Below, in pieces: positions 13,736 to 40,322 of a stretch of DNA of 64,000 nt. This DNA comes from Podarcis cretensis (lineage: Eukaryota), in NCBI GenBank assembly GCA_951804945.1, contig OX638152.1:78988001-79052000 (forward strand). The letters run 5' to 3'. The position numbers and the translations under genes are program-made. The notes beneath the pieces were generated by a model. That model ran no database searches. It worked only from the letters and a program-made list of their open reading frames with translations, and was not told the origin of the DNA. Every line of letters starts with the position of its first letter. The first letter of the stretch is position 1.

Positions 13736-13988
13736 GTGAGCATTACAGTTAAAGCGAGCTATCTTATGTAAACGGAAAATGACTTCTGTGCTCCCAAAGT
13801 AATATTCCTTTGTTTGAGGACTACTTACATTAAGAGTTATTAGCATCTGAAACAGAAAACCCAAAATGGAGGACTTTCCCCCCAAGGCAAGGTAAATAAT
13901 TTCCACCTTTGCTGGTGCTCAACAATTTGCTGTTTTATTCTGTGGCTGCCTCGCTCTACCTAATGGGATAGACTTTTGAGTAGTTATG

Positions 13989-14396
13989 TGTGATGGGACA
14001 ATGAGCTACTTGTGCGTAAAAGGGTTAGTCCCTCGGAGTTTGCTTAACGTAGCAAAGCTCTGCCTTGAGCGGAGCCCTTGGACATGGCTCCGTCAGTCAC
14101 TGGTAGAATCCGACAGTGGGCGCTTGCGGAAACGTTTCCAGCATAAAAGCTGCTTGACGGAAACGCGTCTCCTAGATTCCCTGCGTGACAGCTTCCGGCG
14201 AGGGGTGGGGGTCGCTAAAGGGGGCCTTGATACCTCCTCACTGTTCTCACTGGAAGTGTCCCAGAGCCTCCCCTCCGACTTCCTGTCCCTGGAAGCTCCT
14301 GCTCCCCCCCTACTGGTTCCCTCTTCTGCTGCTGAATCTCTTCTATCCTCCCGGAGCCCTTCCACCACCTGTTCTTCCGATGGCAGTTCCCTGACA
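13989..14396 (-). mobile_element. Solo LTR (408 bp), TGTCAGGG-ended family, probably Gypsy-like
   Basis: TG...CCCTGACA termini and 5-bp TSD TTATG (13984-13988, 14397-14401); CpG-rich. The minus-strand start TGTCAGGGAACTG resembles the 27897 element. Confidence 0.78.
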
Positions 14397-14712
14397 TTAT
14401 GCATAGGATTGCACAGTTAATAGATTAAAACTCACAGGACAACCAAGATTACTTTAGTTGGGCGATAAGCTCAATAGTTATTTTGACTAGTAAATAATAG
14501 CAGTTTGGGAGTGGCGCTTTGGGGGGTGGAATGAGGGCGTGGGCTGGCCCCCTTGTGCTAAAATTATGGTTCTAATGGGGGGGGTTAACTTGGGTGGGTA
14601 TTGTTTTATTTTGGAGGTGATGTTCTTTGTTTTCAAATATTATATCTTAATATGCATTTTGTATTTGTGGTCTGGGATACTGTTTAGGGGCTTTTGTTGG
14701 GGAATGTATTTA

Positions 14713-14942
14713 CAGTGGAACCTTGGTTGTCGAGCGTCTCAGAAGCCGAATAAATCGGAACCCGAACACCAAAAACCCGGAAGTAATTGTTTCCATTTTC
14801 AAACATGTCTTGGAAGTCAAATGGCTCCCAAGGTGCATTTTTCATTTTTTCCCATTGACTTTGCAGCCAGCCCATTTTCAAATGTTTCAAGAGTCAAACG
14901 GTCTTCTGGAACAGATTATGTTCAAAAACCAAGGTTCCACTG
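14713..14942. mobile_element. Tc1/mariner-type MITE, CAGTGG family
   Basis: TA|CAGTGGAACCTTGGTT...AACCAAGGTTCCACTG|TA. Confidence 0.87.
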
Positions 14943-14964
14943 TATTAGTTCGTATACATTAGTA

Positions 14965-15206
14965 CAGTGGTACCACGGGTTAAGTACTTAATTCGTTCCG
15001 GAGGTTCGTACTTAACCTGAAACCGTTCTTAACCTGAAGCACCACTTTAGCTAATGGGGCCTCCCGCTGCTGCTGCGCCGCCGGAGCACGATTTCTGTTC
15101 TCATCCTGAAGCAAAGTTCTTAACCTGAAGCACTATTTCTGGGTTAGCGGAGTCTGTAACCTGAAGAGTATGTAACCTGAAGCGTATGTAACCCGAGGTA
15201 CCACTG
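14965..15206. mobile_element. Tc1/mariner-type MITE, CAGTGGTACC family
   Basis: TA|CAGTGGTACCACGGGTTA...TAACCCGAGGTACCACTG with internal TAACCTGAAG repeats; sister copies at 15417 and 32942. Confidence 0.87.
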
Positions 15207-15416
15207 TTGTTTTCATAATGTATTTTGTACTTCCAACATTGTAACTTTTATGTTGTAAACCACCCTGAGACCTAATAACGATTCATTGCCTTTAGAAGAG
15301 GCAACCTGATGAATTTCTTTAAAGGTAGATAGAGAACATTTGTTTTGTTTTGTTATTGCTTTCCTAGATTAATTTCGAACATAAAATTATGAAAACAACT
15401 AAAACAGTTAACAATA

Positions 15417-15570
15417 CAGCGGTACCTCGGGTTACATACGCTTCAGGTTACATACTGTCAGGGGCCCTGACACATACGCTTCAGGTTACAGACTCCGCTA
15501 ACCCAGAAATAGTGCTTCAGGTTAAGAACTTTGCTTCAGGATGAGAACAGAAATCGTGCTCCGGCAGCAC
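15417..15570. mobile_element. Truncated, inverted copy of the 14965 MITE carrying a 17-bp insertion
   Basis: Reverse complement of about 15075-15206, plus TGTCAGGGGCCCTGACA flanked by CATAC. Confidence 0.82.
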
Positions 15571-17507
15571 AAAAGTGTTAGGGGTGGAATCTTACGGTGG
15601 GACCGTATCTTGATAAGCATGTGTCATGGGCGAGAATGGCAATCTCAGTATCATCCTGTGTGTCTTGGCAATTCTGGGAGAAATTGTAGTAGCAACCTGC
15701 TCAAGTGCACTGTTTCCCTCAGTGAGCAAGGGACAACTTCTTGGCCCTTGAAAATGAGGGCTGTGGTGAGGTGATGTAGCTACGAGAAGCAACTCACCAG
15801 GTGTGGTGGAGGTCCTGTGTTAGCTTCCCTGCAGGTGGGGTTCTGTTCCTCACTGGTAGGGAGATGGGCGAGGCGGTGGGAGGTCTGCGCAGTGCAAACC
15901 TCCCTTTTCCTGATCCAGAGCTACTGACGGAGTTTCTAAGATAACTCCCACAGGCCAACGCTGCAGCTTCTCCCACTAATATATTAAGATATCGCAACAC
16001 TGTCAGAGTTGTCAGGCATGTAATATATGTTGTGCTCATCTCTCTGAATCACCTCTTTTCACACCACGGGGGTTTCCACAATAGGAAATTCATCTTTGTC
16101 ATCATAACTGCTTGTACTGACTTTCGGAAACTTGGAAAAATGCCTCTTCGTAGACCCATGCTTGTTGTTTTCCCTGAACATCTTGAAAGTCTCTTGTGTC
16201 ATTCTCCCTGCCCGAGAGCAAAAGCATTGAATTCACCATTTGCAGATTAGGGATACATTGTGATTTTAAATAATATACCTTCAGAAAATTAGGTACATGT
16301 CAGCATGTCACATGCTTAAACAGGCAAGATCTAATTTGCCAGTGGAAAAGTGTCATCCTTGAATGGTGCTCTCTTGTGACTCTTTGTAGAAATATTCTTG
16401 GTTCTCGTGGGAATGCCTCTTAAAAGCATTTTCATGTTTGGATCTAGGATCCTTGAGGAAACCTAGGATTCCTCCAAGTGAGTTTCTTTCTAGATCTATT
16501 TCTGTATTTGTGGTGAGACTGGGCTCACCCAGCAATGTTACAACACAACAGACCATGTCCTCAGCTCCAGCCCAATGCTGAGACCTTGAACCCACACCTG
16601 TGAACTCTTGCCTCAGTACAATGGCTCATATGAGTGCGCTGTTAGATATTTCTATCACACTGTTCCTACAGAATTCAGTTAAGTTATATTTAAATCTATA
16701 TACTGGAAAGATCTAACGAACATCATTTTGGGGGGTATTGTTTCGTTCGTTACGTTATGTATTTTTGTGTTTTTATGCTATGAATCCTGAGATGAAGGGC
16801 ATTCTACAAACTGAATAAATAATAATAATTTTAAAAATAGCTACCTCACTTCCGGTTCTAAAATGTTAGAATTTCAACACAGCATGTTAGGATTTTATAA
16901 ACGTTAGAGGAGGTTTTTACTCAAGACATCTTACCGCTAATGTAAAAAGGATAGAAAATAACAATAGAAACCTAAAGTCTTATTCAAGATGGCAGGTTGT
17001 AGAGAAATTATCCAATCATCATAATTCTTTTTAAAAATGTGAACAGTTAGCTGAAAAGATGTGGCAGTATGGTGGTAGAAACCTGCTGAAATGTACTATA
17101 TTCTCATTTCCTCTCTCCCTTTCATTTGTCTTGCAAGTATATTTTGAAAATGGGATGTAGACTTCCAAGAGCTGTTGGTAAGAATAATTCTTCTGTCAGA
17201 GTCAGATAATCAAGGAAAAGAATGCTTCACTACCTCATATATTATTTAAAGCAGTAGCCACTGTGATCTCATCTCTTTTTCATTATTATGTAATATTTAC
17301 ATATCTTTGGAGTCTGCACAATAAGTTCACACTAACGAGCCAAGACAACTTTCCACCAAGAAGAATACAATAAAAAAACTAGTAAGGGCTAGAGGGCGAA
17401 AGGAGGAGTGAGAGATACAACAAAAAAGGTTGCATAATTCATCCTTTCATAGTCATCTTCTTCACCATCATCTTCACCCATTTTAGCTGTAAGATCCCCT
17501 CCCTTTA

Positions 17508-18006
17508 CAGTGCTACCTTGGTTCTCAGACTCCTTGATACTCAAACAACTTGGAACCCAAACACTGCAAACCCGGAAGTAAGTGTTCCACTTTGCGAACT
17601 CTTTTTGGAAGCTGAACATGCTCTGTTTTGAGTGTTATGCTTCCGATTTGAGTGCCACATTTCCGATTTGAGTGTTACGCTGAGGTCTGTCTGTTTTTGC
17701 TATTTATTTTGCATTTGGGTAGCTCTTTTTTGTTTTGTTTTTGTGACTGCGTGGAACCCAGTTCAGCTACTGATTGATTGTGTGACTGCAGTACATTGTT
17801 TATTGCTTTCATTTTATGGATCAGTGGTCTTGCTAGATAGTAAAATTCATGTTAAATTGCAGTTTTAGGGGTTGTTTTTGAAAGTCTGGAACGAATTAAT
17901 CTATTTTGCATTACTTTCTATGGGAAAGTGCGCCTTGGTTTTAGAATGCTTTGGTTTTGGAACGGACTTCTGGAATGGATTAAGTTTGAGAACCAAGATA
18001 CCACTG
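17508..18006. mobile_element. Tc1/mariner (Tigger-like) non-autonomous element
   Basis: TA|CAGTGCTACCTTGGTTCTCA...TGAGAACCAAGATACCACTG|TA. Confidence 0.87.
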
Positions 18007-18099
18007 TATATATAAGGGTGCAATATGTATTTCTGTACAGCTACAGAGGAAAAGTACATTTTCTCCAGTCCATTCAGGCCACTAACTGCAAGGTGTAGG

Positions 18100-18345
18100 A
18101 CTCTCATTCTGGATTGGGATCTCTGGAAGCCATTTGGATTCATTAAGTGGTGGGAAAGACCATTTGAATTGGTTCCCACCTCCCTGTGGAGAAGAAGGGT
18201 CACAGAGAAGTCTAGTTGCATCAGGAAGTGATCTGACCATGGCACTTCTTTTGTTCTACTGGAACTTTGTCTCAGGTCACCCATGTCTGCAGAGGTAAAC
18301 ACCAAATCTAAGGCATGTCTACGACTATGATGAGTAGGGCCAGAT
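18100..18345 (-). mobile_element. LINE (L2/CR1 clade) endonuclease-domain fragment
   Basis: GPTH...HALDLVFTS...VPWSDHFL matches the APE endonuclease C-terminal LD...SDH motifs. Confidence 0.7.
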
Positions 18346-20444
18346 TTAAGAAACAATGAAAATACAATTTGAAAAACCACACGGTGCAGCACAGCACGTT
18401 ACAATTGCTACAACAGACAAAAAAGAATGATAATAATTTAAGTTGTGCGTCAAGATCCTCAGCAATTTTCAAGTGATCTATTGGAGGAAAAACATTTGGC
18501 AACCACTGGCCTGGATTGAAAGCATGATTGAGTCATAATGAGCTATAATAGAAGTTTCAATTAATCTGACCGTGACAATTTTTATAAAACTACCAAGGCT
18601 GTAAAATGTGATGGCTTTAATAGTCTGTGGAATTAATTTTTTAAAAGTTTGGCATTTCATATTTCTCAATGCTGCTATTCTCAATTGATGCCTGTCATTG
18701 TAATTTAAAATTATATTCTGTATTTTTAATGTTATTTTTCATTTTGTATATAGTGTGACAGCCTGTGGCTAAGTCACTATTTAATAACCCAATTAGCTGC
18801 TTCCCACAGCCTACAGGCTTTATGACTCTTTTCTAGCACACTTATAATTTTATTCCTTTTCCATCTCCAAGACGTGTAAAACTGATTCTGAAAGCACAGT
18901 AATTGACATTAAAACACACAGATGTGTGTAATAGTTATGCAAGAACACTCACAGGATGGCTGTACTTGTTACATCCTTCCTACACAAACTGTTCTTTCAA
19001 CATTATCATCCAAGGAGATTTACATTCTAACCGTTCAAGATGAATCTCAAGGTAATGGCAGGACTAAAAATGTGTGAAGTCTTTAAAAACTTTTAGGAGT
19101 CTTTGCCTGTTTATCTTCCAAATTTGTGCTGACATGAGAACAGACTACTTTCCCCCCATGCAAACATTACCTCTGAAGCAGCTTACTATCATTCCCAAAA
19201 CAACAATAAATAGTCCTGCATACTCCCTTCCCACCCACAACTCAGGGAAATCCATCATCAAAAGAGAGGAACAAGGAAAACATTGCTTTGTGTATACTAA
19301 CTCATATTTATAGATTCAGAATTAGAAATTACTGTTATAATTTAAATAGGAATACCACACTCTGATCATAGTGAAGAAAACTGTGGCCAGGTGATGTGTC
19401 CCTGCTCAGTGTGCGATACTGATGCTACAAATAAATATATTATAATAATAAATGTTCATGGGGAACAGTTCTCAAGGTCCCTGCCCTCCTCTATTTCTCT
19501 CCCACCCTCTCTCTTACACACGGAATCGTAGAATTAGAGTGTTGGAATGAACCTTACTTTCTCTTATAGAAACAGTATTCTAATCTTGTTTATCAAACGC
19601 TGCCATTAATAAATGCATTTCCAATTGAAGCTGGATGTTGAAATGATGACTTGAAGATTGGCCTATGGGCATATGTCATTCTGTATCCATCAATCATAAT
19701 TTGCTTGGCTAAATAATTCTGACATAGTATTGTTGGATAAGGAGCTAGGTGAAGTGCTCTCTTTCAAGCTGTATGTTAGAAGTCCTTGGGTCTGCCAACA
19801 ATTACTTAGGGACATTTTTCAAGGAAACTTTGCCTTAGTTAGGAGGACCTTCCGCCCTGGGATATGCTACTTTTCATTAGAGCACAGAAGTTAAGTTTAA
19901 AGTTAGCTTGTCACAATGTTTGATCTGATTGATCGTATTTCTATGGCACTTTTGATTCAAACGAATCTCAATGCAGCTTACAAACAATAAATAATACAAA
20001 ACGATAAAACGTAACAGAGCATCACAAATACAGCATAATGTCTGTTGCATGCGTAATGAAAACATTAGGAATCCACTTTATTATCAAATTAACTGCTGGT
20101 ATAATGGCTATAAATGTATCTGGAGGTTTGCAAGCCACCCTGAGTGTGCCTACGCATCAAAGGACAAGATATAAATTATGGAAACAAACACAATTATTTA
20201 TTCTATTGCTCACTTCTGAAGCTATCCTTAATTATATAGAAAAATGTCTAGGATGTCACTAGAGGCCCCTGGCAATCATATCTAGCCCGTCTGGGAGCAG
20301 AACCAGTTTTAACCATCAGGCAGCTGCCTAGGGTGGCAGAATTTTAGGGGCAGCAAAATTAGTAGGGGAGTAGAATTTGAAAGGCGGCAAATGATGACCG
20401 TGTTGGAAGCAAGAGCCAGCAGCTGCCATTCCCAGTAGTCTTCA

Positions 20445-20778
20445 TTGTGAGTCGAGGACCCGCCACCCGCTTTGAGATAAATAAGACACAGGGACACATG
20501 TATTTAGGTTAATGGGCTAAAGAAGACCACAACTTTATTGGTTACAGCATGTGAGTGGCATTGGCTTAGGCATTGGATCAAACAATCTATACATGACTCC
20601 ACCCCGGGCAGCGGGGAGTCATCCTAAGGTTAACAACCAGTGGGAGGAGCTTGTTGGTGCAAATACACCTGGAAGCTTCCCCTGATGTCACCGGGGGTTG
20701 TGCCATGGCCCTAGCCACCAGCAGGGCATTGTACAGGATCCACGACCGCTGGATTCCTTTAGCGGAATACCCAAACAA
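20445..20778 (-). mobile_element. Retroelement terminal-repeat fragment, homologous to about 47725-48025
   Basis: The reverse complement matches the other copy (GATCCAATGCCTAAGCCAAT...AATAAAGTTGTGG...CCCATTAACCT...GGTCCTCGA). Family unassigned (DIRS/Ngaro-like or LTR). Confidence 0.65.
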
Positions 20779-22532
20779 GGGGATTATTGGGAGTGTGGGA
20801 CCGCTGCATCCACATTATCCTTAGGGGGGGAAAAACCTCCCTAGTGAGTTTTGTTGGGGAATAGAGAGAGAGCACAGAGCTCTCCTCAGAGCTTCCCCAT
20901 CTTGGGAGGCCCTTTTGAGGTCCCAAATATCACAGAGACTGCCTCCTTCCCATCAGACTAGCTCAAGTGCTCAGATTGGGGCCCTTTGGGTAGTGTCTCT
21001 ACCCTCAGAGGCTTGGGGGAGGGGTGGCGGTCCAGGAGAGGGCATTCCATGGCAACCCCTAAGCTGTGGAACTCCATCTTCACAGAGGTGTATCTGGCTT
21101 CTGAAGGAAGGTGCTGAAGATGCACCTCTTTGGACACTTTGGGTATATACTGTTAGGACCCGCCTTATTTTTTATGGTTACAAGTTGTTCTGTTGTTGTT
21201 AACATTGTGTTTTAATGATGGGACCTTTGGGTGAAGGGCAGGCAACAAATCAATAAAGTGTTGGCTAAATTGTTGGAAGCAGAAGTGTGGAAACATTTGG
21301 CATAGATGCAGTCCAGACACACCCTTCATAGATTCTCTCTTAAAAGCAGTGAATGGAGAACTTCCAGATGTTCTTGGACTTCCAACTTCCGTTTTTGCCA
21401 GCCAGCATTAATGGTGGGTCAGGGATGGTGGGTGGGATTGTCCCAAGAGCATCTTGAGGGCTACAGGGTTCCCACCACGATCTCAAACACATGGCGTTGA
21501 CTTAAAATTGTGCATTCATGAATTACTGCTTCTGACATTCAACACAGACGGAATTATAAGTTCACAAACAGAAATGATAAATCAGGAGTTGACTAATAGC
21601 GATTTGTTGGGCATCAGATTTGTTGATGAAACCCGCATGCAAGTGTGAAGTCTGCAAAGCTGGACTATTAGGACCTTGTACAATCACAAAGTTGACTATG
21701 GATTCGACTTAGGTATTCTAATTGGGTTCAGCCTAGGTATTCTTAATGTTTGATGACAAACGAATGGATTGAAGACCTTTTGCAGAGCCATTCAGATCTC
21801 AGAAAAAGTGACTGGGGCTACAGGTTGTACGACTGGCATTTAAAAAGCTTGTGCCCCTTCAAATTAACCTTTGTACTACAGCTCCTACTGAAAAGAGTAC
21901 TGTAGAACAACCAGTCAGTTGCATGTACTCGGAAATAAAATGTAGACATTTACATTTAGCGCAACATGAAAAGTAGAAGCTATGGCCTTTATCTTTTTAA
22001 AGACCATGTAAAAATTATTGGGAGGCGGGGAATGGCTTTCCTTGTAATTTTAAGCATGTGTGTGTTATCCATTCTGAATAGCTTGGTGGCAGGATAATGT
22101 CCATGTATTATTTAAGGCCATGGAAGTAGAGATTATAAGATGTTAAGAGCTGTGAAGGCAGAGTGAGTGAGATGATGCTCATCCAATAAGCCTAGATCAT
22201 TTAGGTCTCTACTGAGGGAAATGGTGTTCCTTTACCCATTTGGACTTGACTTCTACTCCAGAAAGGTCTTTTTGAGGAGCACAAGATCTGGTACACTTTA
22301 TCCATGCCTTTTGAGCACACCAGGTAGCTGTAAAGTCTTGCGATGCCAACAGTCTTTAGGAAACCTTTAAGGCTAGCTTGTGGAAGCCTTCTTAGACACA
22401 GAGCTTCCTTTGCGAGGTCTGCGAATTAGTAGTTTTTTAAAAATTCAGTATGCCTTAGCAGTTATAGATCTTTTTGGCTCACACTTGCCTTTCCCCCCGT
22501 TCTGTAACTTGTGGCAGGAGGGAATCAAATTA

Positions 22533-22948
22533 CCGTATTTTTCGCCCTATAGGATGCACTTTTCCCCCTCCAAAAATGAAGGGGAAATGTGTGTGCGTCC
22601 TATGGGGTGAATACAGGCTTCAGGAAGCTCTGCGCAACCCTCGGGAGCCCGGCGCCAAGCCGCGCCGGGCTCCCAAAGGTTGCGCAGAGCTGCCTGCATT
22701 CCGAAGCCTCGAGCGCTCTTCAGCGCGCCCGGGCTTCGCGCACCTCTCCACAAGCCTGGGGAGACCGGCGCGGCTCCCTAGGCTTGCGGATAGCAGGCTG
22801 TTCTGGGGGCTGGGGTCGGGGGAAGCTCGGGCTTCCCCCGCGCCAGCCCCGTGCCTGGGGGAAAAATAATTCCCCCCCCTTTATTTCCATCCCCCAAAAA
22901 CTAGGTGCGTCCTATAGGGCAGTGTGTCCTATGGGGCGAAAAATACGG
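22533..22948. mobile_element. Tc1/mariner-type MITE, CCGTATTTTTCGCC family with GC-rich core
   Basis: TA|CCGTATTTTTCGCCCTATAGGA...TCCTATGGGGCGAAAAATACGG|TA; same family as 37368-37976, in inverted orientation. Confidence 0.9.
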
Positions 22949-23034
22949 TAGGTCTCAGGGCTAGGTCACTTCTCACAAGGCTATTCATCAAAAGTAGCTT
23001 GGAGACTAATACCTAGCTTATTTTCGGAATGTAT

Positions 23035-23110
23035 AAGCGAGATGAGTGCCGCAACCCCAGAGTCGGTCACGACTGGACCTAATGGTCAGGGGTCCCTTTA
23101 TCTTTACCTA
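23035..23110 (+). mobile_element. Sauria SINE 3' fragment
   Basis: AAGCGAGATGAGTGCCGCAACCCCAGAGTCGGTCACGACTGGACCTAATGGTCAGGGGTCCCTTTA..TTTACCT matches the 3' end of the full copies. Confidence 0.85.
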
Positions 23111-23222
23111 CAAGTTAGTTCCTTAATGGCAACATTTGTTTTGTAAGATACACATTTTAATCCCCTCATGTTAAATAATGAGAGACTGAGGCATCCAATC
23201 AAATAAAAACAAACAAACAAAC

Positions 23223-23228
23223 TTTATT
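23223..23228 (-). terminator. Candidate ST6GAL2 polyadenylation signal AATAAA
   Basis: The minus strand reads TGTAAATAAAGTTTGTTTGTTTGTTTTTATTTG, with several upstream TGTA motifs. Confidence 0.55.
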
Positions 23229-24499
23229 TACAAGAAAAATCTGTACACTGTGCATACATAAAAATATATAAAACCAAAATAGAAAATACAAAAGTGTTAA
23301 AATGTATACAAACACTGTTTTTAAAAATGCGACTCCTGGAAAATCTCAAGCTTTCGTTTCTTGAAGAGTGCACATTCACTTAAAAAATTATCATACAAAA
23401 TAATTCTCAAGGCTATTTAAAAAGTACACAGTCTTCTATTTGAGTAGCTCGGTGACTACAGCTTTAGAAAATGAGATGATATGTGTGAATATAAGGCATG
23501 TACACAGCTGGCCATGTAACAACAGAGGTTCAAATTATGTTGCCATGTTACAGAGTGGAAACCTGCGATATAAAAATGCATTTTATTTTTATTTACTTTA
23601 TTCAATTCATACACCACCTTTCATCACAAAGATCTCAGGGCGGTTATTTAAATAAACCTTCAACAGACATGAGGTACTTATATAAACAGTTAATCCAGAT
23701 GTTCTCTTTGCACAGAAAGCTGCAGTTTTATGGCTGCAAATGTCTCTATATGAGATTTTAAAATTCGTTGAAATGTGCCTGTAATTTCATGCCATTTTCA
23801 GTATTTTATCTTCAAATTGCAAAGTATAAGGAATGGAGGGAAAGAGGTTGGTTCCTTTTTAAAAATAAATAAATAAATACAGTCATCATCATTTATTTTT
23901 ATATCCCATCCTTCCTTCTATAGGTGCACTTGATCTTTACTCCAAATTTGCATGCCATGTAAGCAGCTGAACTTTCAAATAATTTAAGAAGAAAATGCGA
24001 AAGCCCAGTCACAACCTTGTCTGTCTTCAATTTCAGCACATGTAAAACTACCCTAGTATGGTTTGTGTGTGAGAGAGAAAGAAAGATGGGGACCTTGTTA
24101 AGAAAATTATGGATTGCAATCTGTCCAAGACAAGGCACTCTGAAATGAAGTCAGAGTTGAATTTAGGGATAGAAAAACCTCGTTGAACAAAATCAAAAGA
24201 ACAACAACTAGCTAGATTTTTTTTCAAGTACTAAGAATTATTTAGCGCAATATTTTCAAAAACCTCCATTTATATTTAATGATCCACTTTAGAAAGGGTG
24301 ATTTTTAACAAGTGTGGAGCATTTTGCAGCTTTCATTACTAACACTTCAAATATTTTTGCATGATGAGCGTAACACCCATAAATGTTTCCTCTGACTTAG
24401 GGATAAGAGCTCACACCGCCACAGGGCCTACTCAACGGCAATAGGGTGTCACAATTTAAGTATTTTGTCTAGTGTGGGGGTGGGCAGAGCTGTTGTGGC

Positions 24500-27700: not shown

Positions 27701-27896
27701 ACTCGCTTCCCCTTGACTTGGCTTGCCAATAAATACTGCAGTGGTAGTGAACATTCAGAAGACTACAAGCCCTGCTGCCCTCTGCCCCAACCTTTCTTCC
27801 TGACACTTACCCCTGAATAGCGCTGCAGCTGGGCTCTGGGGCAGCGAAAGAAAACTAAAATGGAAAAGGCTGCTGAAGATCTCTAGTCTAACATCC

Positions 27897-29385: not shown

Positions 29386-29639
29386 TCACTTCCATCCAGG
29401 GCATTTCACTGACCTGAACCCTGGCAAAATCACTTTTCCTTTCCGGTACAGATCTTCCTGGAAGCCTCTGTTCATCCTCTGCACCAGCAGTTTCTCATAA
29501 AGCAGCGGGTGGTAAGCCCCCAAGGTACAAGCCGCATCATAGTAGAGTTCATGGTAGTGGCAGAGATCGGTCTGCCGGACTGAAGGAATGTATTCGTATA
29601 CATGGACTTCGCTGCACATGGACATCATGATGAGAATCC
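29386..29639 (-). CDS. ST6GAL2: ST6GAL2 terminal coding exon (sialylmotifs S, III and VS)
   Basis: TTTTCAG acceptor; [20 protein letters not shown]...CHYHE...[10 protein letters not shown]...CPGWK then TGA. The exon lengths 946+98+102+175+254 sum to 1575 nt, an intact frame. Confidence 0.96.
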
Positions 29640-30776: not shown

Positions 30777-31088
30777 CCGTATTGGCCCGAATATAAGCCG
30801 CACCTTTTCCCCAAATTCCGACCGTGAAAAGTTAAAGTGCAGCTTCTATTAATGACCTTACAAAAAGAATCCAGTATGCAGCCAGGAGTGCAGGGTAAAC
30901 AGCGCCAGGAGCGCAGCACAGCGGCGCCCGCCCCACACATACTCCCCCACCCTCTCCCCCAAGGCCAGGAAGGGAGAAAGTGAGGAAGGGAGTGGCATAT
31001 TCGGTTATTGTCTTTTTTCTCCCCCTCCCCCATGACTTTTAAATGTGTGGCTTATATTCAGGTGCGGCTTATATTCGAGCCAATAAAG
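30777..31088. mobile_element. Tc1/mariner-type MITE, CCGTATTGGCCCGAATATAAGCCGCACC family
   Basis: About 28-bp imperfect TIRs and TA TSD. Confidence 0.85.
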
Positions 31089-31350
31089 TACATCGCCCAG
31101 GGCCAATTTGAGGGCCATCGTGCTCTGGCACTCAAACTGAGGGAGGAACGAGCTGTGAGGTACCAGAGCTGATGCAGCACATTCTTCAAAGGCTCCAGAG
31201 TGAAAAGTTTGGGAAAGGTTGGATTGCAATGTAAACAGAAGAATCTGAATCTTCACTTAACTTTTTAAATGCACGAATCTTCATCCTAATTTGTAACCTG
31301 ATAATTGCAGCTTAGCAAAATGAAACTGGTTGGGTATTTTTGTTTTCCAG

Positions 31351-31590
31351 TTCTACAAATGCTTTCTGATGCTTTTCCACTGCCAACCTGCTTCAGCGGC
31401 TGACGGAGAAACCACCTGCCAGTCAAAGGTCACAGTCATCCAACTGAACCGGAAAGCAGAAGGTGGAATGACTAGGCAAGCACTTCCCCAAATGGACGAG
31501 AAAATGGACCACCTTCTGAGCCCAGAGTCAAGCCCAGAGCCTGTTTCAGACAGCCCGCCACAGATGTCCAAGGAAAATTCATTCTTGTGA
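31351..31590 (+). CDS. tmtops2: TMT-type opsin terminal coding exon 4 (helix 8 and C-tail), nested in the last ST6GAL2 intron
   Basis: Strong acceptor TTTTTGTTTTCCAG ending at 31350. The phase-0 frame continues NKQ|FYKCFLMLFHC (rhodopsin has NKQ|FRNC). 79 aa, then TGA at 31588-31590. Confidence 0.85.
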   Translation, partial: FYKCFLMLFHCQPASAADGETTCQSKVTVIQLNRKAEGGMTRQALPQMDEKMDHLLSPESSPEPVSDSPPQMSKENSFL

Positions 31591-32204
31591 ACGAGTACAA
31601 GCTGCTGCCTAATCCATCTATATCATATATGTTACAGTTTTATTGCCAGCTTGCTTTGTTTCCCCCTAAGGAATCTGCTGTGCATTAAGCAGGAACAAAA
31701 CGTGTTGCTATTAACTTTCTGACTCTGAATCAAGTAGGAATTATGTGATTATAGCACCAAAGAAAGGACTGGTGCTCTAGATATGCAAGGGAATAATGTC
31801 TTGAGGTAACTGCTTGAAGTTAATGGTAGATGCCTCAAAGCCCATTCTATTGACGTTAGCTCCTCTGCCTCAGCTTCACAAAAATCTCATTCTAGATCTT
31901 TGTAACCTGATAAGCACTGACCTCTAGAATAGTTTTCAAATGTGTACTAAGTCACAGTATTAACTGTTTTTTTAAAGAGTAGTAAGTATGCGCTAGCTCA
32001 CACATCTGCTGGTTCATATTGAGGCTGGTAATAACCTTTAAATATTCCAATTCACTTTCACAACACAAAATGTAGATCTCCCTTCTCAAGCAAGTACAGT
32101 GATTTAGTATCAGTCAGATTTGGAGGGGGCAGGGTTATAAGGAAGATCATTATTATTAAATGATGATGGGACAGCAACTTCGTTTTAGCCAATATATGTG
32201 CACC

Positions 32205-32332
32205 AAGATAGCTCAAGTCGGTTGAGCATAAGAGCATAATCACAGGGTTGTGGGTTCGAGCCCCACATTGGGCAAGAGACTCCTGCATGGGGTCAGACTA
32301 GACGACCCCCACAGTCCCTTCGAAATCTACAT
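32205..32332 (+). mobile_element. tRNA-derived SINE with CR1-like tail; related minus-strand copies at about 33465-33610 and 45155-45290
   Basis: A-box TAGCTCAAGTCGG, B-box GGTTCGAGCCC, then a CTAGACGACC...GTCCCTTC..ATCTACA CR1-type 3' end. Confidence 0.7.
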
Positions 32333-32941
32333 GTGAAGAGGCCACATGTACAAATAACCTACATATTTATGGTTTTAGCTTTTAAAAAAACATATTGGCC
32401 CCAGGTTAGAAAGCTACAGCTGTTAACAGGAAGCTTAATTTTAATTACTGTTTGAGTTATCCCTACCCAGTATGTGCTTTCTACTGCTTTTGTAAAGCAC
32501 ATTCCCATGCCTAAGAAGTCAGCATGGACAACACTATCCTCAGCCCTTGTTCACCATTAGGTACCTGATGTGAATCTGTTTCCCACTTTCTCCTGCCTAA
32601 TAGTATTTCCCTGCCCTATGTATTTCTTAAAGGTGAAATAATGAAGGCACAAATGCAGACAATTCCAACAAGAAAGAAAAGTGGGAGGTGTCTAAAGAAA
32701 CCGGTGTGGCTGCATAAGGAGCTTACAGATGAGGTGATATTGAAGGAGGAGGGCATGTATTAAGAAATGAAAGAAAGGGAAATCACGAAGGAAGAGTATA
32801 CACATGTAGCCAACAGTTGCAGGGGGAATGTCTGGGGTGGGGCAAAGCTCAGAAAGAAGCTCAGGCTTGGGGGAAAAGGTTAAAAATAATTATAAAGATT
32901 TCTTTGGCTGTGTTTGAAGCAAGAGGAGGAACATGCAAGTA

Positions 32942-33147
32942 CAGCGGTACCTCTGGTTAAGAACTTAATTTGTTCCAGAGGTCCGTTCTTAACCTGAAAC
33001 TGTTCTTAACCTGAGGTTAAGCTAATGGAGCCTCCCGCTGCCACACGATTTCTGTTCTCATCCTGAAGCAAAATTCTTAGCCCGAGGTACTACTTTCGGG
33101 TTAGCAGAGTCTGTAACCTGAAGCGTTTGCAACCCGAGGTACCACTG
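32942..33147. mobile_element. Tc1/mariner-type MITE, sister of 14965-15206
   Basis: TA|CAGCGGTACCTC...GAGGTACCACTG with a shared internal sequence. Confidence 0.82.
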
Positions 33148-33199
33148 TGGTAGGTTCTTTGCAGTGCCCAACCTGGCAATAGCAGAACTAATGATGCCA

Positions 33200-33850
33200 G
33201 AAGGAAGCTACAGCCCCAAATAGGAAAAGAGGGTGTAAGGGAACATCTAGTTACTTTAAATGAATTCAAATCTCCAGGGCCCAATGAGCTACACCCAAGG
33301 AGCTTATGAATGTAATCTCAGAGCCTTCATCTATAATCTTTGAGATTTCTTTGAGAAGAGGTGAGGTCCCTGCAGACTGGAGGCGGACAAATGTAGCCCC
33401 CATCTTCAAAAAGGGCAAAAGAAGAAGATTCAAGGAACTACTGTGGTCAGTTGGGCATGTTTTATAGAATCATAAAACTGTAGAGTTGGAAATGACCACA
33501 AAGCCAATCTAGTCCAACCCCTGCGATGCAGAAATCTTTTGCCCAATGTGGGGCTTGTACCTGTGACCCTGAGATTTAAGAGTCTCGTGCTCTACTGAAC
33601 TATCCCAGCGGTTTAGCCTGGAAAAGAGGAGACCAAGAGGAGATTATGATAACCATCTTCAAATATCTTTGGGCTGTCACATGGAAGGCAGAGCAAGCTT
33701 GTTTTCTCATGCTTGGGAAGAGAAGGATCCAAAGTTCAAGTTACAAGATAGGAGATTCTGACTCAACACTAGGAAAAACCTTCTAACAGCAAGAGCTGTT
33801 CAACAGTGGAACGGACTCCCTTGAAAGCTGGTGGACTCTCCTTCCAGTAT
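33200..33850 (+). mobile_element. Degraded CR1 LINE fragments, interrupted by a SINE
   Basis: KSPGP, DWRRTNVAPIFKKG and ...RNY motifs, followed by GTTTAGCCTGGAAAAGAGGAGAC...CAGTGGAAC CR1 3' ORF2 sequence. Confidence 0.75.
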
Positions 33851-34889
33851 AGACTCTCATACATAGCAATGACAATCCATGCACCATTACAAAGAATTAT
33901 CTTCTACATCAATGTAGGATTTGTCAGCCAAAAACAGTGCAATGTTCAGCTACCTATGTCACAAGCTCTTATCGCACAGCTATGTATTTAGGAATTTTAA
34001 ACAATGGTTTGAAATTAGCTCAATAGCAGAAGATCAAACTCTTGGGATTCTGGGGTTTGTGTTGAAGTTCTTTTATCAGAATTAAATAAATGTTTAAGTT
34101 CGTTGTATGAATAGTAAATATAAATGGATATTAAGGACTCTAAAAAAAAGGAAGAAATTTAATTTGTCCTTGGCAATTTTAATCACTCAAGAGCTTTTCA
34201 ACTTCCAGCATGTATCTTTGTGCAATGCAATTACACTATGTAATTAGCAAGATAATTAAAAAGTCATTTCCAGGAGATTGGAAGTACACAAGAATGTAAT
34301 TTCATTTACCTTATTGTACCAACTGTTTAGTATGAAAGAAATAATATATTTTGAAAACTGATTGGGATTCAGCTCAGCTTCTAGTTTAGCAAAAACTCGA
34401 TTTTGAGAACATTTTGAATGCTGCATATTCCAGAAACTAAGCACTAACAATTCCTGCAACTTTCATTCAAAACTATGGAGTAGCCATAAAACTTCAAGAT
34501 ACATATGTACAAATGATCACAGCAATATTTGCAAAACCATAAGTGTTCTGATTCCCACGTGGCAAACTGACCAGAGAAGTTCCACAACGTGGAATCCTTT
34601 CAATTTCTCTTCACTGGAGGAAAACTAATCTTTATGCACACCCATTGACATGAACCATAGCTGCTTTTTCCATTGAAATTAAAAAAAACCTGTAGACCTA
34701 CATCTGTAAACGTTGGCAATATAATCACAAAAATTACCAATCGTTTCAAAATATCTACTGGTTCCCAGTCCAAGACTGGCATGTTTTATTTATAAGTTAA
34801 AAAAAGAAGTAAAAATAAGACCACACTAATTTGCCATTTTGCAGCAAATCTTTTGTGCAAAAATGATGTTCTAAACATGCTATCACAGA

Positions 34890-35560
34890 CTTGTAGAGTT
34901 GAAATGGACCCCGAGGGTAGTCTAGTTCAGTCCAGTCCCCTGCGATGAAGGAATCCCAACTAAATCATCCATGACAGATGGCCAGCCAACCTCTGCTTTA
35001 AAACTTCCAAGGAAGAAGAGTGCACTACTTCTTGTAGTCTGTTCCACTGTTGAACAGCTCCTACTGTTGGCAAGTTCTTCCTGAGGTTTAGCTGGAATCT
35101 TGTAACTTGGATCCCATTGGTTCCAGTAGTTTACACCTGAGTTTTCTTTTTCCCCTTATTTTGAAGATGGGGACAACATTTGCCTGCCTCCAGTCTTCAG
35201 GGACCTCGCCTGTTCTCCAAGAATTCTCAGAGATTATAGAAAGAGGCTCTGAGATTACATTAGCAAGCGCCTTTAGTACTCTTGGTACTGCAGCTCATCA
35301 GGCCCTGAAGATCTGAATTCATTTAAAGTGGCTAGGTGTTCCCTTACCACCTCTTTTCCTGTGTTAGGCTGCAGCTCCCTCCTTGCATTGTTCTGTTATC
35401 ACCAGGTTGGGCACTGCTTTCCTTTCGGGTGAAGACAGTGGCAAAGTAGGTGTTGAGTAATTCTGCCTTCTCCCAGTCACCCAATAGCATTTCTCTGTCT
35501 TCTCCATACTGCCCCCTTCTCTGAGCCAGGGCTTCTTCATGCACACAGTGAAACATCCTT
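34890..35560 (-). mobile_element. Degraded CR1 LINE fragments
   Basis: EKAELLNTYFATVFT and GEVPEDWRQANVVPIFK motifs on the minus strand; CR1 3' tail near 34890-34930. Confidence 0.78.
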
Positions 35561-36764
35561 GGAGCACATTGCTCATTCCCTAATTCCCTAAAAGAGAAAG
35601 TAGTCCTGAAAGTTTTCAGATCTTGATATTTTCTAGGCTTATTTGAAGAGAGCGTTTTTGTGGGTGTGTATGTGTGCACACACACACTAATAAAAGTTTG
35701 TTAGCATCATCTGTATCTTGGTTCCCACCACTGATTCAAACACTATTCCGTCTAAGTCCATTACGTGCACAAACGTTTATATTATGCCACCTGACTACTG
35801 CTCTGTTTTAAGGATGGCTTGTGATTCTCAAGCCTACACCTGCTTCTGGTGCTTAAATCTATTTTCATATCTATGTGGGGTTTTCTCTCTGTGTGCTTGT
35901 GTGTGTACACACAGCAGTCTTACATAGCTATTTCATAATAGTATTGCTTGTTCCATCATGTCAGTTCTTGCACAAACGGGGAGCAGATTTAGTGCTACCA
36001 AGAAGCTCTGTTGTATTTTTGTTATGTCATGTTACCTCTGGAAGCCTTTAACAGGAATTCAATAAAATGTTTTGTGGTTAGTTCACACATAGTTTGCTTT
36101 CCTAAAGCCAAATTGCTTCCCAATCCTTCTTAAGTCATAACACTTCTAGCAGGTGTTGGGGCAAGCATTATGTTAATTTCTGAGCACTGAGATTGGGTCT
36201 GATAAGCTACTAGCAGGCCATAAATCAAGCAGAGATGTTAATATGTCAGGCTTGGCGGAAATGCCTGCCTGGCAGAGGTTTGTGCAGATGTGAGAAGGAT
36301 CCTGAGTGGCCTTTGGAGAAATGTCATTGCATTTTCAAACTGAGTTCATCTTTACTTTAAAATGCGTGCTGCAGTGATAACTTATGGCAAAGTTAGAAAA
36401 CTGAAAGAGTGAAAGCATTGAAACATTTGTTAGAGGCCTACCAACGGATGGATTGACTAGCACATAATCTAGTGACATGAAAGCCAGTTCACACATGTAT
36501 GTTCACCACTTATTGATCATAATATCAGGTCAATGTGAGTGTATTTGCGTGATAATGAATTGCACATATAAAGTAGCTTTCTTTACCAATTAGCCATCAC
36601 AGAGAGAACATCTCTCTCTCTCTTGTATCGGCTGCCAAAACCAGTACTTCTAAAAGTTATGAGAGATCAAAAGGTGAACATGCAAACAGAATTTAGTCCT
36701 AAATTCCAAACAGTCAGAGGAAAAAGCAGCTGCCAAAGCTTATTTTGAGTTTGCACTTCCATTA

Positions 36765-37130
36765 AAGGTAAAGGTAAAGGTACCCCTGCCCGTAGGGGCC
36801 AGTCTTGACAGACTCTGGGGTTGTGCGCCCATCTCACTTAAGAGGCCAGGGGCCAGCGCTGTCCAGAGACACTTCCGGGTCACGTGGCCAGCGTGACAAA
36901 GCTGCATCTGGCGAGCCAGAGCCGCACACGGAAACACCGTTTACCTTCCCGCCGGTAAGCGGTCCCTATTTATCTACTTGCACCCGGAGGTGCTTTCGAA
37001 CTGCTAGGTTGGCAGGCGCTGGGACCGAGCAGCGGGAGCGCACCCCGCCGCAGGGATTCGAACCGCCGACCTTTTCGATCGGCAAGTCCTAGGCGCTGAG
37101 GCTTTAACCCACAGCGCCACCTGCGTCCCC
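36765..37130 (-). mobile_element. Sauria SINE, full length, subfamily A
   Basis: GGGACGCAGGTGGCGCTGTGGGTTAAA head, GGTTCGAATCCC B-box, (ACCTTT)n tail. Confidence 0.93.
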
Positions 37131-37367
37131 ATTAGCAACTTCCATTAGCAACCATTTAACATAACCATTTAACATTAGCACTTCCATTAGCAACCATTTA
37201 ACATAAGGCTCAAACACAGATGGGATGGGAAGGATGGGAAAACATCGACCTATTTCAAACACATTTCACACACACAAAAAACCCACTTTGTTTTTGTAAA
37301 CTACCTTAAAAACTTTATGCTACAGGGTAGCATACAAATGCCAGAAATAAAAATACAAAAAGATGTA

Positions 37368-37976
37368 CTGTATTTTTTGCCCCATAGGACGCACCGCCCC
37401 ATAGGATGCACCTAGTTTTTTTCTGGGGGGAAATAAAGAAAAAAAAATTATTCCCCCCCCAGGCGCGGGGCTGGCGTGGGGGAAGCCCGAGCTTCCCCCG
37501 ACCCCAGCCCCCAGAACAGGCTGCTGCCTGCAAGCCTTGGGAGCCCAGAGGGACCTCCCACTGGGCGCCAAGGCTTGCGGACATCTTCCCAAAGCATGGG
37601 GCGTCCTCCGGAGGACACCCCGAGCTTCGGGATGCAGGCTGCCGCCCCAAGCCTCGTGCACCAGGCGGGACCTCCCACCGGGCGCGGGAGGCTTGCGGAC
37701 ACCTTCCCGAAGCACGGGGCGTCCTCCGGAGGGCACCCAGTGCTTCGGGATGCAAGCTGCCACCCCAAGCCTCGCGCGCCCAGCGGGAACTCCCCCGGGC
37801 TCGCAAGGCTTGCGGATAGCTTCCTGAAGCCTGGAGAGCGAGAGGGGTCGGTGCGCACCGATGCCTCTCGCTCTCCAGGCTTCAGCGAAAGCCTGCATTC
37901 GCCCCATAGGATGCACACACATTTCCCCTTCATTTTTGGAGGGGAAAAAGTGTGTCCTATAGGGCGAAAAATACGG
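37368..37976. mobile_element. Tc1/mariner-type MITE with an internal ~117-bp GC-rich tandem duplication
   Basis: TIRs C(T/C)GTATTTTT.GCCC..TAGGAC with TA TSD; internal units start at 37550, 37667 and 37785. Confidence 0.9.
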
Positions 37977-39803
37977 TACATTTGAGGAAATCTGGACCAA
38001 TGGCCATGGGAGTAAAATGGAGAAGGGAACAGGGTATGGACCGTGTTGCTGCAAAATGAGTCGTCCTCATAAGTGCTTTAAAAAAATTAGATGGGGAAGC
38101 ATAAGCGTTTTGGAGTGTTTCACACAGTAAGACTTTGCGAATGAGCTCCATGGCTTTATGAGAGTGTCTTTGTGTGGTATGTAATCTGGTGATACATTAG
38201 TCCTCCTCTGGCTCTACACACTTCACACACTCTGGGCGTGTGGACAAACAAGTAAAGAGTGCACAGTGGCATATCGTTCCTCATTCCTACTTGTCAGTTG
38301 AAACTGAGTTTTGCTATCTAGACCACAGATGTGAATGAGCCTGAGCTATCCAGTGAATTAGGACATGGGCTGAACTTTTATTTTTATTTCATCCACAATA
38401 AATAATGATTCCCCCCCCCCCCGCGGCCTTTTAACAAAAAGGCATTTTCAAGCTCATTTGAAAATAGGTCAGTTTTAACATCCTTCCGTATCTGTGTGTG
38501 TGTGTATTATTGAAAATAAAGGTCTGTCGCATTATGACAAGTCCTCATTTATTTCATTCACTTATGCCGAAATTTGCCACCAAGAATATTCGTTCATAAA
38601 TGTAAGGTTTTAGTATTGCAAATAACCCAGCAGGATCTTCTCTAATTTACATCCCTTGGCATTCACAACACCAGCTATTCCAGTCCGCCAGCATTAGCTT
38701 GAATCAGCAATCTTCTGTGAGATTTGGTGATGTATAGTCACACTGAAAAATTCATCCCTGAAACATTTATGCTGACTGATAGCATCAGATGCTGATGTAT
38801 GACTCTGCCCTCGACACTCATCTCTCAAATAAACAGTTATACAATTTCCACTTTCAAGCGCATTACATGGTTATCTGGTTATTGATGTGGTGTATGTTTC
38901 ATATTCAGTGGTGACACAAGCATCAAATGTTTGCTTTCAGTTTTTACCTTTATTTTTCGTTAAGTCTGATTCCTGCATCCATCTCCCTTCTATACTCAAC
39001 TCTCCATCCAGCTAGGGATCTGCATCAGGGGCAGATACAACTGTTGCATGCTTGCTTCTCCTATCCAATACGCTGCCCCAGTTAAGATATTCCCAATATT
39101 ACCACTCAACTGTTTCAGATGGGGAATTGGAACAGCTAGGCTTAGTTCCTCTGTGCTTAACAGCTTTATCTGATTGGAGCTACTTGTTCACTGCTCTACC
39201 ATGTAGAGAGTTGTTAAAAGAATCTGCAGTTCAGAGCCAAGAGCTAGGAAAAGCAAGTGTGTAAAAGCCATTATGTGTTATTATCAAAGGTTTGCTTTTT
39301 GTTCCTCTGAATATGGCTTGTATATTCAAAGTGTCCTGTTGGGCTTTCGTTGCATCTATCACTGTGGTGTCCCTGATGTCAGATGAGGTCACAAGTCACA
39401 ATTTCACCTTGCTGTGCCAACACATTCCATTCATACCCCCAATTACGCACAACTGAACCCAAGCAAGTCATAGCCATACCTGCGCGATTTAGGACAATGC
39501 ACAGTTCCCTCTGATCAGTGTTTCACATTCCGAACACACAAGACATTTTCAAGGCATCGGTGCAGTACAGGTCATAAAATAAACACTGTTTTGTAACTCC
39601 AGCTCCACAAAGAACATGCTGCTGGAATATTGGTTATAGTAGTAGACTTTGACCTGGTTAAAATGATGCCTTCTGTGTTTATTGCTTATATAAATTTTGG
39701 AGTATACTTTAGTAATAAATGGTTTTAGACAAAGCTTTGTTTCTTTCAAGTCCTGCAGATACACAATCCTGGAAAGTTCATAAGATGTGCGTTTAATAGT
39801 ATA

Positions 39804-40158
39804 AAGGTAAAGGCAAAGGTACCCCTGCCCGTACGGGCCAGTCTTGCCAGACTCTAGGGCTGTGCGCTCATCTCACTCTATAGGCCGGGAGCCAGCGCTG
39901 TCCGCAGACACTTCCGGGTCACGTGGCCAGCGTGACAAGCTGCATCTGGCGAGCCAGCGCAGCACACGGAACGCCGTTTACCTTCCCGCTGGTAAGCGGT
40001 CCCTATTTATCTACTTGCACCCGGGGGTGCTTTCGAACTGCTAGGTTGGCAGGCACCGAACGATGGGAGCGCACCCCGCTGCGGGGCTTCGAACTGCTGA
40101 CCATGCAATCGGCAAGTCCTAGGCACTGAGGTTTTACCCACAGCGCCACCCGCGTCCC
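39804..40158 (-). mobile_element. Sauria SINE, full length, subfamily A
   Basis: Same structure as 36765; 13-bp TSD GTTTAATAGTATA (39791-39803, 40162-40174). Confidence 0.94.
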
Positions 40159-40322
40159 TTTGTTTAATAGTATATATGGTACTTATTTGTTAAACAGCAT
40201 GCTTCTTCCATCCACCTCCAAATCAAATTTCATTACCACCACAGTCAAGCCGCACATGCTAAACTTCAGCATATACTCTACAGACGCAGCTAATGAAGAA
40301 ATCTACCGATAAGCACACCTAC

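Follow-up and report, generated by a model that had tools for sequence, protein, structure and literature searches.

The closest described counterpart of the locus analysed here is the chicken TMT2 opsin gene, the fourth exon of which lies inside an intron of its convergent neighbour st6gal2 (Kato et al. 2016, PLoS One 11:e0163925, PMC5115664). Chicken cTMT is supported by cDNA and 3'RACE and occurs as a long and a short isoform. The short form, cTMT-S, has three exons without exon 4 and measures 992 bp, the exon 3/4 junction being at nt 895; the long form, cTMT-L, responds to light, while cTMT-S gives no response (PMC5115664). In the same paper TMT is reported to be expressed in neural tissue, TMT2 lies between uxs1 and st6gal2 in chicken, zebrafish (TMT2B) and Xenopus, and TMT1 adjoins st6gal1. 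The layout is given there only in a figure legend; the text is silent on a st6gal2 last exon within the opsin last intron and does not discuss antisense overlap (PMC5115664).

Another member of the opsin-3/TMT group is entangled with an unrelated gene at the mammalian OPN3 locus, where CHML sits inside an OPN3 intron. There, however, one intron encloses an entire gene, whereas TMT2 and ST6GAL2 are two multi-exon genes that exchange the positions of their terminal exons. In convergent overlapping or nested pairs, opposite-strand units likewise share DNA without sharing exons, and polymerase collision, intron retention and cryptic polyadenylation may result (PMC3192792, PMC8467205). Most described convergent pairs are simple 3'UTR overlaps or full nestings; pairs whose terminal coding exons are interleaved reciprocally are less common.

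We analysed a window of 64,000 nt (the whole stretch of DNA under study) from Podarcis cretensis and confirmed that the interlocked layout of TMT2 opsin, a non-visual light sensor, and ST6GAL2 is real. The two genes are orthologous to those of chicken, with an opsin of four coding exons and opsin exon 4 placed within an st6gal2 intron in both species. The chicken layout is backed by cDNA and 3'RACE, whereas the lizard layout is known here from genomic sequence, and the intron sizes of 17.6 and 10.7 kb are specific to the lizard genome. The layout is not unreported, given the 2016 chicken paper; the TMT-ST6GAL2 linkage that the first-pass annotation named for non-placental vertebrates was right, as chicken, zebrafish TMT2B and Xenopus all have it (PMC5115664). 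The layout is already known, and the lizard adds one more species to a conserved locus.

The opsin and sialyltransferase exons

Homology searches were run exon by exon, the exons being kept separate rather than joined into a spliced model. In tblastn searches of the window, gar and herring TMT2 matched exactly three exons and Elgaria ST6GAL2 exactly five, in interlocked order. The following features belong to the opsin:

5948..6267, + strand: TMT2 opsin coding exon 2, 320 nt; end of TM3 to TM5/ICL3, with the E181-equivalent inside
13502..13735, + strand: TMT2 opsin coding exon 3, 234 nt; TM6-TM7 with the retinal lysine, NKQ at the end
13736..13771, + strand: read-through of the exon-3 donor; 11 extra codons, then TAA (translation)
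13736..31350, + strand: opsin last intron, 17,615 nt, from exon-3 donor to exon-4 acceptor; contains the ST6GAL2 last exon and any 3'UTR belonging to it
31351..31590, + strand: TMT2 opsin terminal coding exon 4, 79 codons plus TGA; helix 8 and C-terminal tail

Exon 1 lies upstream of the window, in which gar TMT2 residues 1-123 had no tblastn match; a Tyr at position 113 in TM3 is a feature of the TMT group (Kato et al. 2016, PMC5115664). Exons 2 (acceptor cattgcag/GC, donor AAACAG/gtaagt) and 3 (acceptor ttaacag/GTT, donor AAACAG/gtgagc) both match Pfam 7tm_1, with E values of 1.5e-17 and 6.7e-10, and are 97% and 99% identical to residues 114-219 and 220-297 of Lacerta agilis P0269, respectively. 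The counterion glutamate at position 181 is present in exon 2, where GLERAGTS stands opposite GLEGAGTS of other TMT2 proteins. Among the TMT2 proteins aligned, the Gly beside this Glu is replaced by Arg in the window opsin and Lacerta only. The retinal-binding lysine of TM7 is found in LAKSS, opposite FAKTS (K296) of rhodopsin. Exon 3 aligns with residues 242-312 of bovine rhodopsin and its last residue falls opposite Q312, the position of rhodopsin intron 4. The junction NKQ/F is at the last-intron position of ciliary opsins, as had been proposed, and the opsin junctions are of phase 0.

The acceptor of exon 4 reads ttttgttttccag followed by TTC, with a strong polypyrimidine tract; the exon begins with TTCTAC and its TGA ends at 31590. 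A phmmer search with the exon-4 peptide retrieved 21 proteins, including the NCBI entry 'teleost multiple tissue opsin 2b', in which the match comes directly after NKQ. In 17 annotated TMT2 proteins, of species ranging from teleosts to marsupials, exons 2, 3 and 4 correspond to contiguous residues. Identity of exon 4 is 90% with residues 298-375 of Lacerta agilis P0269 and 36-39% with Hyla, gar and herring, and the end of the tail (SKENS..) and the stop position are kept in squamates and turtles. In phmmer, profile searches and alignments, the signature FY(K/R)CF..LFHC ... TVIQLN links the window opsin to proteins named TMT opsin 2a/2b. Judged by this homology, exon 4 encodes the genuine C-terminus of TMT2, which is conserved across bony vertebrates; the expected likeness of the peptide at 31351 to TMT C-termini is borne out by its place after NKQ in the 17 annotated proteins. 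The assignment to TMT2 derives from the named matches and from the ST6GAL2 neighbour, both genes being found within the window by tblastn, and the matches listed comprise no TMT1, TMT3 or OPN3 sequences. Database names of TMT2 opsin entries vary, several being 'opsin-3-like', 'parapinopsin-like' or 'VA opsin-like'.

These data bear on the view that the exon at 31351 is either vestigial or a product of faulty annotation or assembly, the opsin ending in or near exon 3 with no transcriptional overlap. The short three-exon isoform of chicken (PMC5115664) and the stop met 11 codons past the exon-3 donor would suit such an ending. However, exon 4 is an intact 79-codon frame behind a strong polypyrimidine acceptor, it shows 90% identity with the C-terminus of a Lacerta agilis protein annotated by NCBI, squamates and turtles keep its stop position, and it encodes the helix 8 and tail that are missing from the unresponsive chicken short form (PMC5115664). 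The window is also gap-free. We consider this view extremely improbable. The exon-3 read-through, which the lizard may use, is a possible counterpart of cTMT-S, and tblastn found no second opsin C-terminal exon in the window.

On the - strand, ST6GAL2 (beta-galactoside alpha-2,6-sialyltransferase 2) runs from 57129 to 29386 in five coding exons:

56184..57129, - strand: ST6GAL2 first coding exon, 946 nt; ATG at 57129, donor ATAG/gtgagt
46181..46278, - strand: ST6GAL2 coding exon 2, 98 nt; second half of sialylmotif L; ctttatag/AC to CAA/gtaagg (tblastn)
43659..43760, - strand: ST6GAL2 coding exon 3, 102 nt; ttttgcag/ATT to GTG/gtaagt (tblastn)
40323..40497, - strand: ST6GAL2 coding exon 4, 175 nt; ctaccag/TGG to ATTG/gtaggt (tblastn to Elgaria P0149 residues 383-441)
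29640..40322, - strand: ST6GAL2 last intron, 10,683 nt, from exon-4 donor to last-exon acceptor; contains the opsin terminal exon
29386..29639, - strand: ST6GAL2 last coding exon, 254 nt, phase 1; stop TGA at 29386-29388

The exon lengths (946+98+102+175+254) add up to 1575 nt, which gives 524 codons plus stop, and the phases fit. The first exon encodes 315 aa with a long N-terminal stem and is 83% identical to Elgaria ST6GAL2. Its best 120 matches listed are overwhelmingly ST6GAL2/SIAT2, the remainder being unnamed, hypothetical or mislabelled, and contain no rival family. The GT29 sialylmotif L is split between exons 1 and 2. The acceptor of the last exon, at 29639, reads ctctgttttcag followed by GG. 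This exon is 93% identical to Elgaria ST6GAL2 (E 6e-51) and aligns with the last 81 residues of solved ST6GAL1, right to the end (E 3e-31); on its own it scores 17 bits with Pfam PF00777, below the cutoff of 23 bits, as expected for a fragment. A second ST6GAL2 terminal exon was not found in the window by tblastn. Turtle isoform tails, compared with the last intron, revealed no alternative ST6GAL2 terminal exon overlapping the opsin exon and matched exon 4 alone.

Geometry of the interlock

Along the window the order is opsin exon 3 (+, 13502-13735), ST6GAL2 last exon (-, 29386-29639), opsin exon 4 (+, 31351-31590) and ST6GAL2 exon 4 (-, 40323-40497). The boundaries that the first-pass annotation had given for these exons, including the exon-3 end at 13735, are all exact by splice sites or stop codons, and canonical splice sites and phases were upheld for all exons of both genes in the window. 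The reciprocal placement it described also stands: the opsin last intron holds the ST6GAL2 last exon, and the ST6GAL2 last intron holds the opsin last exon. The two genes are an interleaved convergent pair, on opposite strands, each with an exon in an intron of the other and the exons non-overlapping. Misassembly was considered and rejected, the 64,000 nt containing no N runs and the exon order being that published for chicken. Between the last exons lies one further feature:

29640..31350, no strand: spacer between the back-to-back 3' splice sites, 1,711 nt; 3' end of both last introns, GC 47%

An Rfam search of the whole window gave no family above threshold, in this spacer or elsewhere. The two acceptors are 1,711 nt apart and point outwards, so that by exon coordinates the transcription units share at least 2,205 nt, in agreement with the earlier figure of at least 2.2 kb. 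A larger figure of 8.4 kb is overstated, since it depends on a putative long ST6GAL2 3'UTR. The terminal exons point apart and therefore do not overlap each other, whatever the UTR lengths, which supports the claim that the two genes share no exon sequence; for either gene, a 3'UTR of about 9-16 kb would be needed to reach another exon of its partner.

Origin and persistence of the pair

We regard the locus as very probably a conserved interlocked convergent pair, presumably an old structural accident held by a synteny lock and without a dedicated regulatory role. The opsin (+) and ST6GAL2 (-) would be transcribed towards each other, their terminal exons having apparently swapped places, and each gene would be transcribed through the last exon or last intron of its partner and spliced across it. 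Because the terminal exons are unable to overlap, any interaction would be confined to the pre-mRNAs and the two polymerases, within the 2.2 kb or more that both units share. The arrangement may have originated, for example, when the junction region was duplicated in tandem and the copies then underwent reciprocal loss; a search of the window for leftover copies of the terminal exons found none. Once formed, it would act as a synteny lock: any single break separating the two genes would cut one of them, which is probably why the arrangement persists, and the same property would explain the TMT2-ST6GAL2 linkage from teleosts to birds. Any transcriptional interference would be a tolerated side effect. 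The absence of a regulatory role is our default rather than a result.

ST6GAL2 is reportedly expressed in neural tissue, as Takashima in 2002 and Krzewinski-Recchi in 2003 are said to have found. Both genes being reported as neural, their co-transcription in one cell is possible. It has been weighed whether the pair is kept by shared 3' regulatory DNA or a chromatin domain for joint neural expression, and not by a synteny lock or interference. Linkage in both paralogous pairs, TMT1-ST6GAL1 and TMT2-ST6GAL2 (PMC5115664), would agree with this, as would the reported neural expression of both genes. However, the interlock alone accounts for the linkage of the TMT2 pair. A shared neural enhancer sits badly with the broad expression of ST6GAL1, and we hold this explanation to be highly improbable.

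The interlock could instead be a regulatory device. Convergent ST6GAL2 transcription in the 17.6-kb last intron of the opsin would hinder Pol II or splicing, and the opsin would give up its functional four-exon form for the short one made by exon-3 read-through, or be silenced; conversely, opsin transcription might disturb splicing of the ST6GAL2 last intron or 3' end formation. With this geometry transcription must be head-on for 2.2 kb or more, reading on past the exon-3 donor adds an 11-codon tail before a stop, and chicken has three-exon and four-exon forms with a light response in the latter alone (PMC5115664). Intron retention and cryptic polyadenylation have also been attributed to nested or antisense units within introns (PMC3192792). 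In contrast, a mammalian survey describes nested coding genes without expression divergence despite interference (PMC8467205), and the literature searched yielded no paper joining TMT2 opsin and ST6GAL2 functionally. That light sensing and sialylation are coupled through Pol II or the pre-mRNAs is purely conjectural. Placental mammals, which are represented among the ST6GAL2 first-exon matches, retain this gene although they are generally regarded as having lost TMT opsins; ST6GAL2 is therefore not dependent on the opsin. A regulatory device is, on balance, unlikely.

We also find it distinctly improbable that the interlock both predates the two vertebrate genome duplications, being present also at TMT1-ST6GAL1, and acts as an opsin isoform switch. 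If this were true, ST6GAL2 transcription across the last intron of the opsin would tip the balance from the functional four-exon form to the one made by exon-3 read-through, which is light-insensitive in chicken, and neuronal sialyltransferase activity would gate deep-brain photosensitivity.

For annotation, the point is that the last exon of this opsin lies 17.6 kb off, beyond the 3' end of another gene. Since only the isoform with the distant exon is light-responsive in chicken, the structural pair described here offers a clean system for the question of convergent transcription, and a natural test case of whether it affects splicing across a long intron.

A metagenome profile scan with exon-4 peptides returned one contig (L001), bird-like and non-human, which carries a CR1 reverse-transcriptase ORF. 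Its opsin exon 4 shows 54% identity, and no ST6GAL2 exon occurs in the 2.8 kb upstream or 10 kb downstream, an extent too short to bear on the interlock.

Two genes on opposite strands

Six-frame scanning together with Pfam and tblastn searches revealed two opposite-strand genes in the window, an opsin and the convergent sialyltransferase gene ST6GAL2.

Exons of the opsin and of ST6GAL2 (window coordinates; slashes mark splice boundaries)
5948-6267, + strand, opsin exon 2 (acceptor cattgcag/GC, donor AAACAG/gtaagt)
13502-13735, + strand, opsin exon 3 (acceptor ttaacag/GTT, donor AAACAG/gtgagc)
31351-31590, + strand, opsin terminal exon, exon 4 (acceptor ttttgttttccag/TTC, stop TGA)
57129-56184, - strand, ST6GAL2 coding exon 1
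46278-46181, - strand, ST6GAL2 coding exon 2
43760-43659, - strand, ST6GAL2 coding exon 3
40497-40323, - strand, ST6GAL2 coding exon 4
29639-29386, - strand, ST6GAL2 coding exon 5 (last)

Residues 1-123 of gar TMT2 had no tblastn match in the window, which places opsin exon 1 upstream of position 1. Exons 2-4 tile contiguous residues in all annotated TMT2-type proteins compared (17 species, teleosts to marsupials). In the Lacerta agilis 'opsin-3-like' protein (P0269) they correspond to residues 114-219, 220-297 and 298-375, with identities of 97%, 99% and 90%, respectively, and fish relatives are named 'teleost multiple tissue opsin 2a/2b'. The Lacerta agilis values mark the window as DNA of a lacertid-type lizard near to that species but distinct from it. 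The gene is probably a TMT2 opsin, judging from its best hits, the signature of the C-terminal exon and synteny.

The E181-equivalent counterion is followed by Arg (6118-6123, motif GLERAGTS) in the window, as it is in Lacerta agilis, whereas all 15 other aligned TMT2 proteins have Gly (GxEGAGTS); within this alignment, Arg at that position is a lacertid-specific change. A two-residue deletion at about 6006/6007 in exon 2, where the second cytoplasmic loop region starts (TLT--SKRG vs TLTLxNKRG), is likewise common to only these two sequences among the aligned TMT2 proteins.

The five coding exons of ST6GAL2 have AG/GT boundaries throughout and add up to 1575 nt, and their phases, checked arithmetically, agree; every search was made exon by exon. 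The 315-aa first exon shares 83% identity with Elgaria ST6GAL2; of its best 120 matches listed, the overwhelming majority bear the name ST6GAL2 or SIAT2, and the others are unnamed, hypothetical or mislabelled. The last exon shows 93% identity to Elgaria (E 6e-51) and matches solved ST6GAL1 structures through their final residue (E 3e-31). At its 3' end (29371-29388, -) a TGA follows ..CPGWK; other sauropsid ST6GAL2 proteins are about five residues longer (..CPGQHRFPYT). Since the frame past the TGA still reads FPYN, what was a sense codon (Arg in Elgaria) has apparently turned into a stop, trimming the ST6GAL2 tail.

The terminal exon of the opsin

The 79-residue peptide of exon 4 was searched with phmmer against 1.84 billion representatives and gave 21 matches at E up to 1e-3. 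Most of these are isolated ORF calls from genomic contigs. Their similarity begins precisely with the F of FYKCF; in front of it come a Q, read from the 'cag' of the acceptor, and unrelated residues that derive from the intron. One match is a pipefish protein, named 'teleost multiple tissue opsin 2b' at NCBI, where the exon-4 similarity comes directly after ...ILMNKQ. The same continuity from NKQ into exon 4 is found in squamates, turtles, birds, marsupials, frogs, a newt, gar and teleosts. The phmmer matches and the direct continuation of NKQ in annotated TMT2 proteins bear out the homology of the peptide starting at 31351 to TMT C-termini, on which the first-pass annotation depended. Exon 4 codes for helix 8 and the cytoplasmic tail, whose end (..SKENS..) is kept in squamates and turtles. 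The last residue of exon 3 aligns with bovine rhodopsin Q312, the textbook position of rhodopsin intron 4; the proposal that NKQ/F marks the conserved last intron of ciliary opsins therefore holds.

A bird-like TMT2 exon 4 (2834-3067, +) also lies on a bird-like 26-kb JGI metagenome contig (Ga0065711_1005103) that is vertebrate host DNA. This contig carries a CR1-type reverse-transcriptase ORF (95-697, -) and no ST6GAL2 exon within 10 kb downstream of the opsin exon, and it ends 2.8 kb upstream of it, which makes it neutral as to the layout.

Reciprocal geometry and the chicken locus

Along the + strand, opsin exon 3 is followed by the last exon of ST6GAL2 (-), opsin exon 4 and ST6GAL2 coding exon 4 (-). 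Each last exon lies inside the last intron of the partner, that of the opsin spanning 13736-31350 (17,615 nt) and that of ST6GAL2 29640-40322 (10,683 nt), and the coordinates first proposed for this interlock are exact to the base. The 3' splice sites of both introns are arranged back to back, with 1,711 nt between them. Because the terminal exons point away from each other, they cannot overlap whatever the UTR lengths, which agrees with the earlier claim that the mature mRNAs share no sequence; reaching another partner exon would need a 3'UTR of about 9-16 kb. The transcription units overlap by a minimum of 2,205 nt (29386-31590), matching the antisense overlap of at least 2.2 kb put forward before. 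The larger figure, 8.4 kb, presupposes that the ST6GAL2 3'UTR is long and finishes close to AATAAA signals at about 23.2-23.6 kb. Downstream of ST6GAL2 (23000-29385, -), poly(A) signals occur at 29320, 29028 and 28985 and as a cluster at 23228-23602, and none of the window's repeated elements is present at 23.0-29.4 kb, which weakly favours the long form; taken together, these features fit a short 3'UTR as well as a long one of about 6 kb. There are no N runs anywhere in the window. Any single chromosomal break separating the two genes detaches a terminal exon, so they are, as claimed, inseparable without breaking one.

A full-text literature search turned up a single paper that mentions TMT opsin together with ST6GAL2 (Kato et al. 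2016, PMC5115664). In chicken retina, 3'RACE yielded a long, four-exon form (cTMT-L) and a short, three-exon form (cTMT-S), and a blue-light Ca2+ response and Go activation were obtained with cTMT-L only, none with cTMT-S (PMC5115664). TMT2 is flanked by uxs1 and st6gal2 in chicken, zebrafish (TMT2B) and Xenopus, and TMT1 has st6gal1 on one side and gpr35 on the other in flycatcher and lizard (PMC5115664). The interlocked layout is already published for the orthologous chicken locus, with cDNA support. The first-pass interpretation thus stands for the geometry, the absence of exon overlap and the antiquity of TMT-ST6GAL2 linkage, and fails on novelty; beyond Kato et al., it makes the reciprocity explicit and adds the antisense argument.

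If the exon-3 donor in the window is read through, 11 more codons and then TAA follow, so a lizard short form like cTMT-S is possible. An Athene cunicularia protein (P0279, 'opsin-3-like isoform X2', 323 aa) joins exon 2 straight to exon 4 (..LLYAV/KQFYKCF..) and is without TM6-TM7 and the retinal lysine; unlike the chicken read-through form, it is an annotated form that skips exon 3.

Origin of the interlock and possible coupling

The opsin terminal exon is homologous to the exon-5 region of rhodopsin, and the last exon of ST6GAL2 to the C-terminus of ST6GAL1. Both are probably ancestral, in which case the interlock would have arisen via rearrangement instead of the gain of an exon. A simple way there would be for the junction to be duplicated in tandem and the copies then lost reciprocally; tblastn and repeat comparison found no relic copies of the terminal exons in the window. 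Once formed, the interlock would lock TMT2 opsin and ST6GAL2 together. The occurrence of TMT-ST6GAL linkage in both paralogous pairs suggests that this neighbourhood, as distinct from the interlock itself, is older than the vertebrate genome duplications.

Regulatory coupling, by polymerase collision or a long-to-short isoform shift, is mechanistically possible and at this stage speculation. Nested units are reported to cause intron retention and cryptic polyadenylation (PMC3192792). The literature searched held no data supporting coupling of TMT opsin and ST6GAL2. In a mammalian survey, nested coding genes showed no expression divergence despite interference (PMC8467205). A passive, ancient structural interlock is the best-supported reading.

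Tc1/mariner-type transposase remnants (..LDWPxNSPDxNPIENLW..) occur in opsin intron 2 (9399-9923, -) and in the intron that separates ST6GAL2 coding exons 3 and 4 (41686-42078, +), and a SINE-like unit is repeated at about 36.8, 39.9, 45.5 and 51.3 kb. Both terminal exons are flanked by two inverted copies of an interspersed repeat (22531-22871 and 37446-37978, 85-93% complementary). These copies resemble ordinary transposon insertions, and an inversion of the intervening segment would disrupt both genes.
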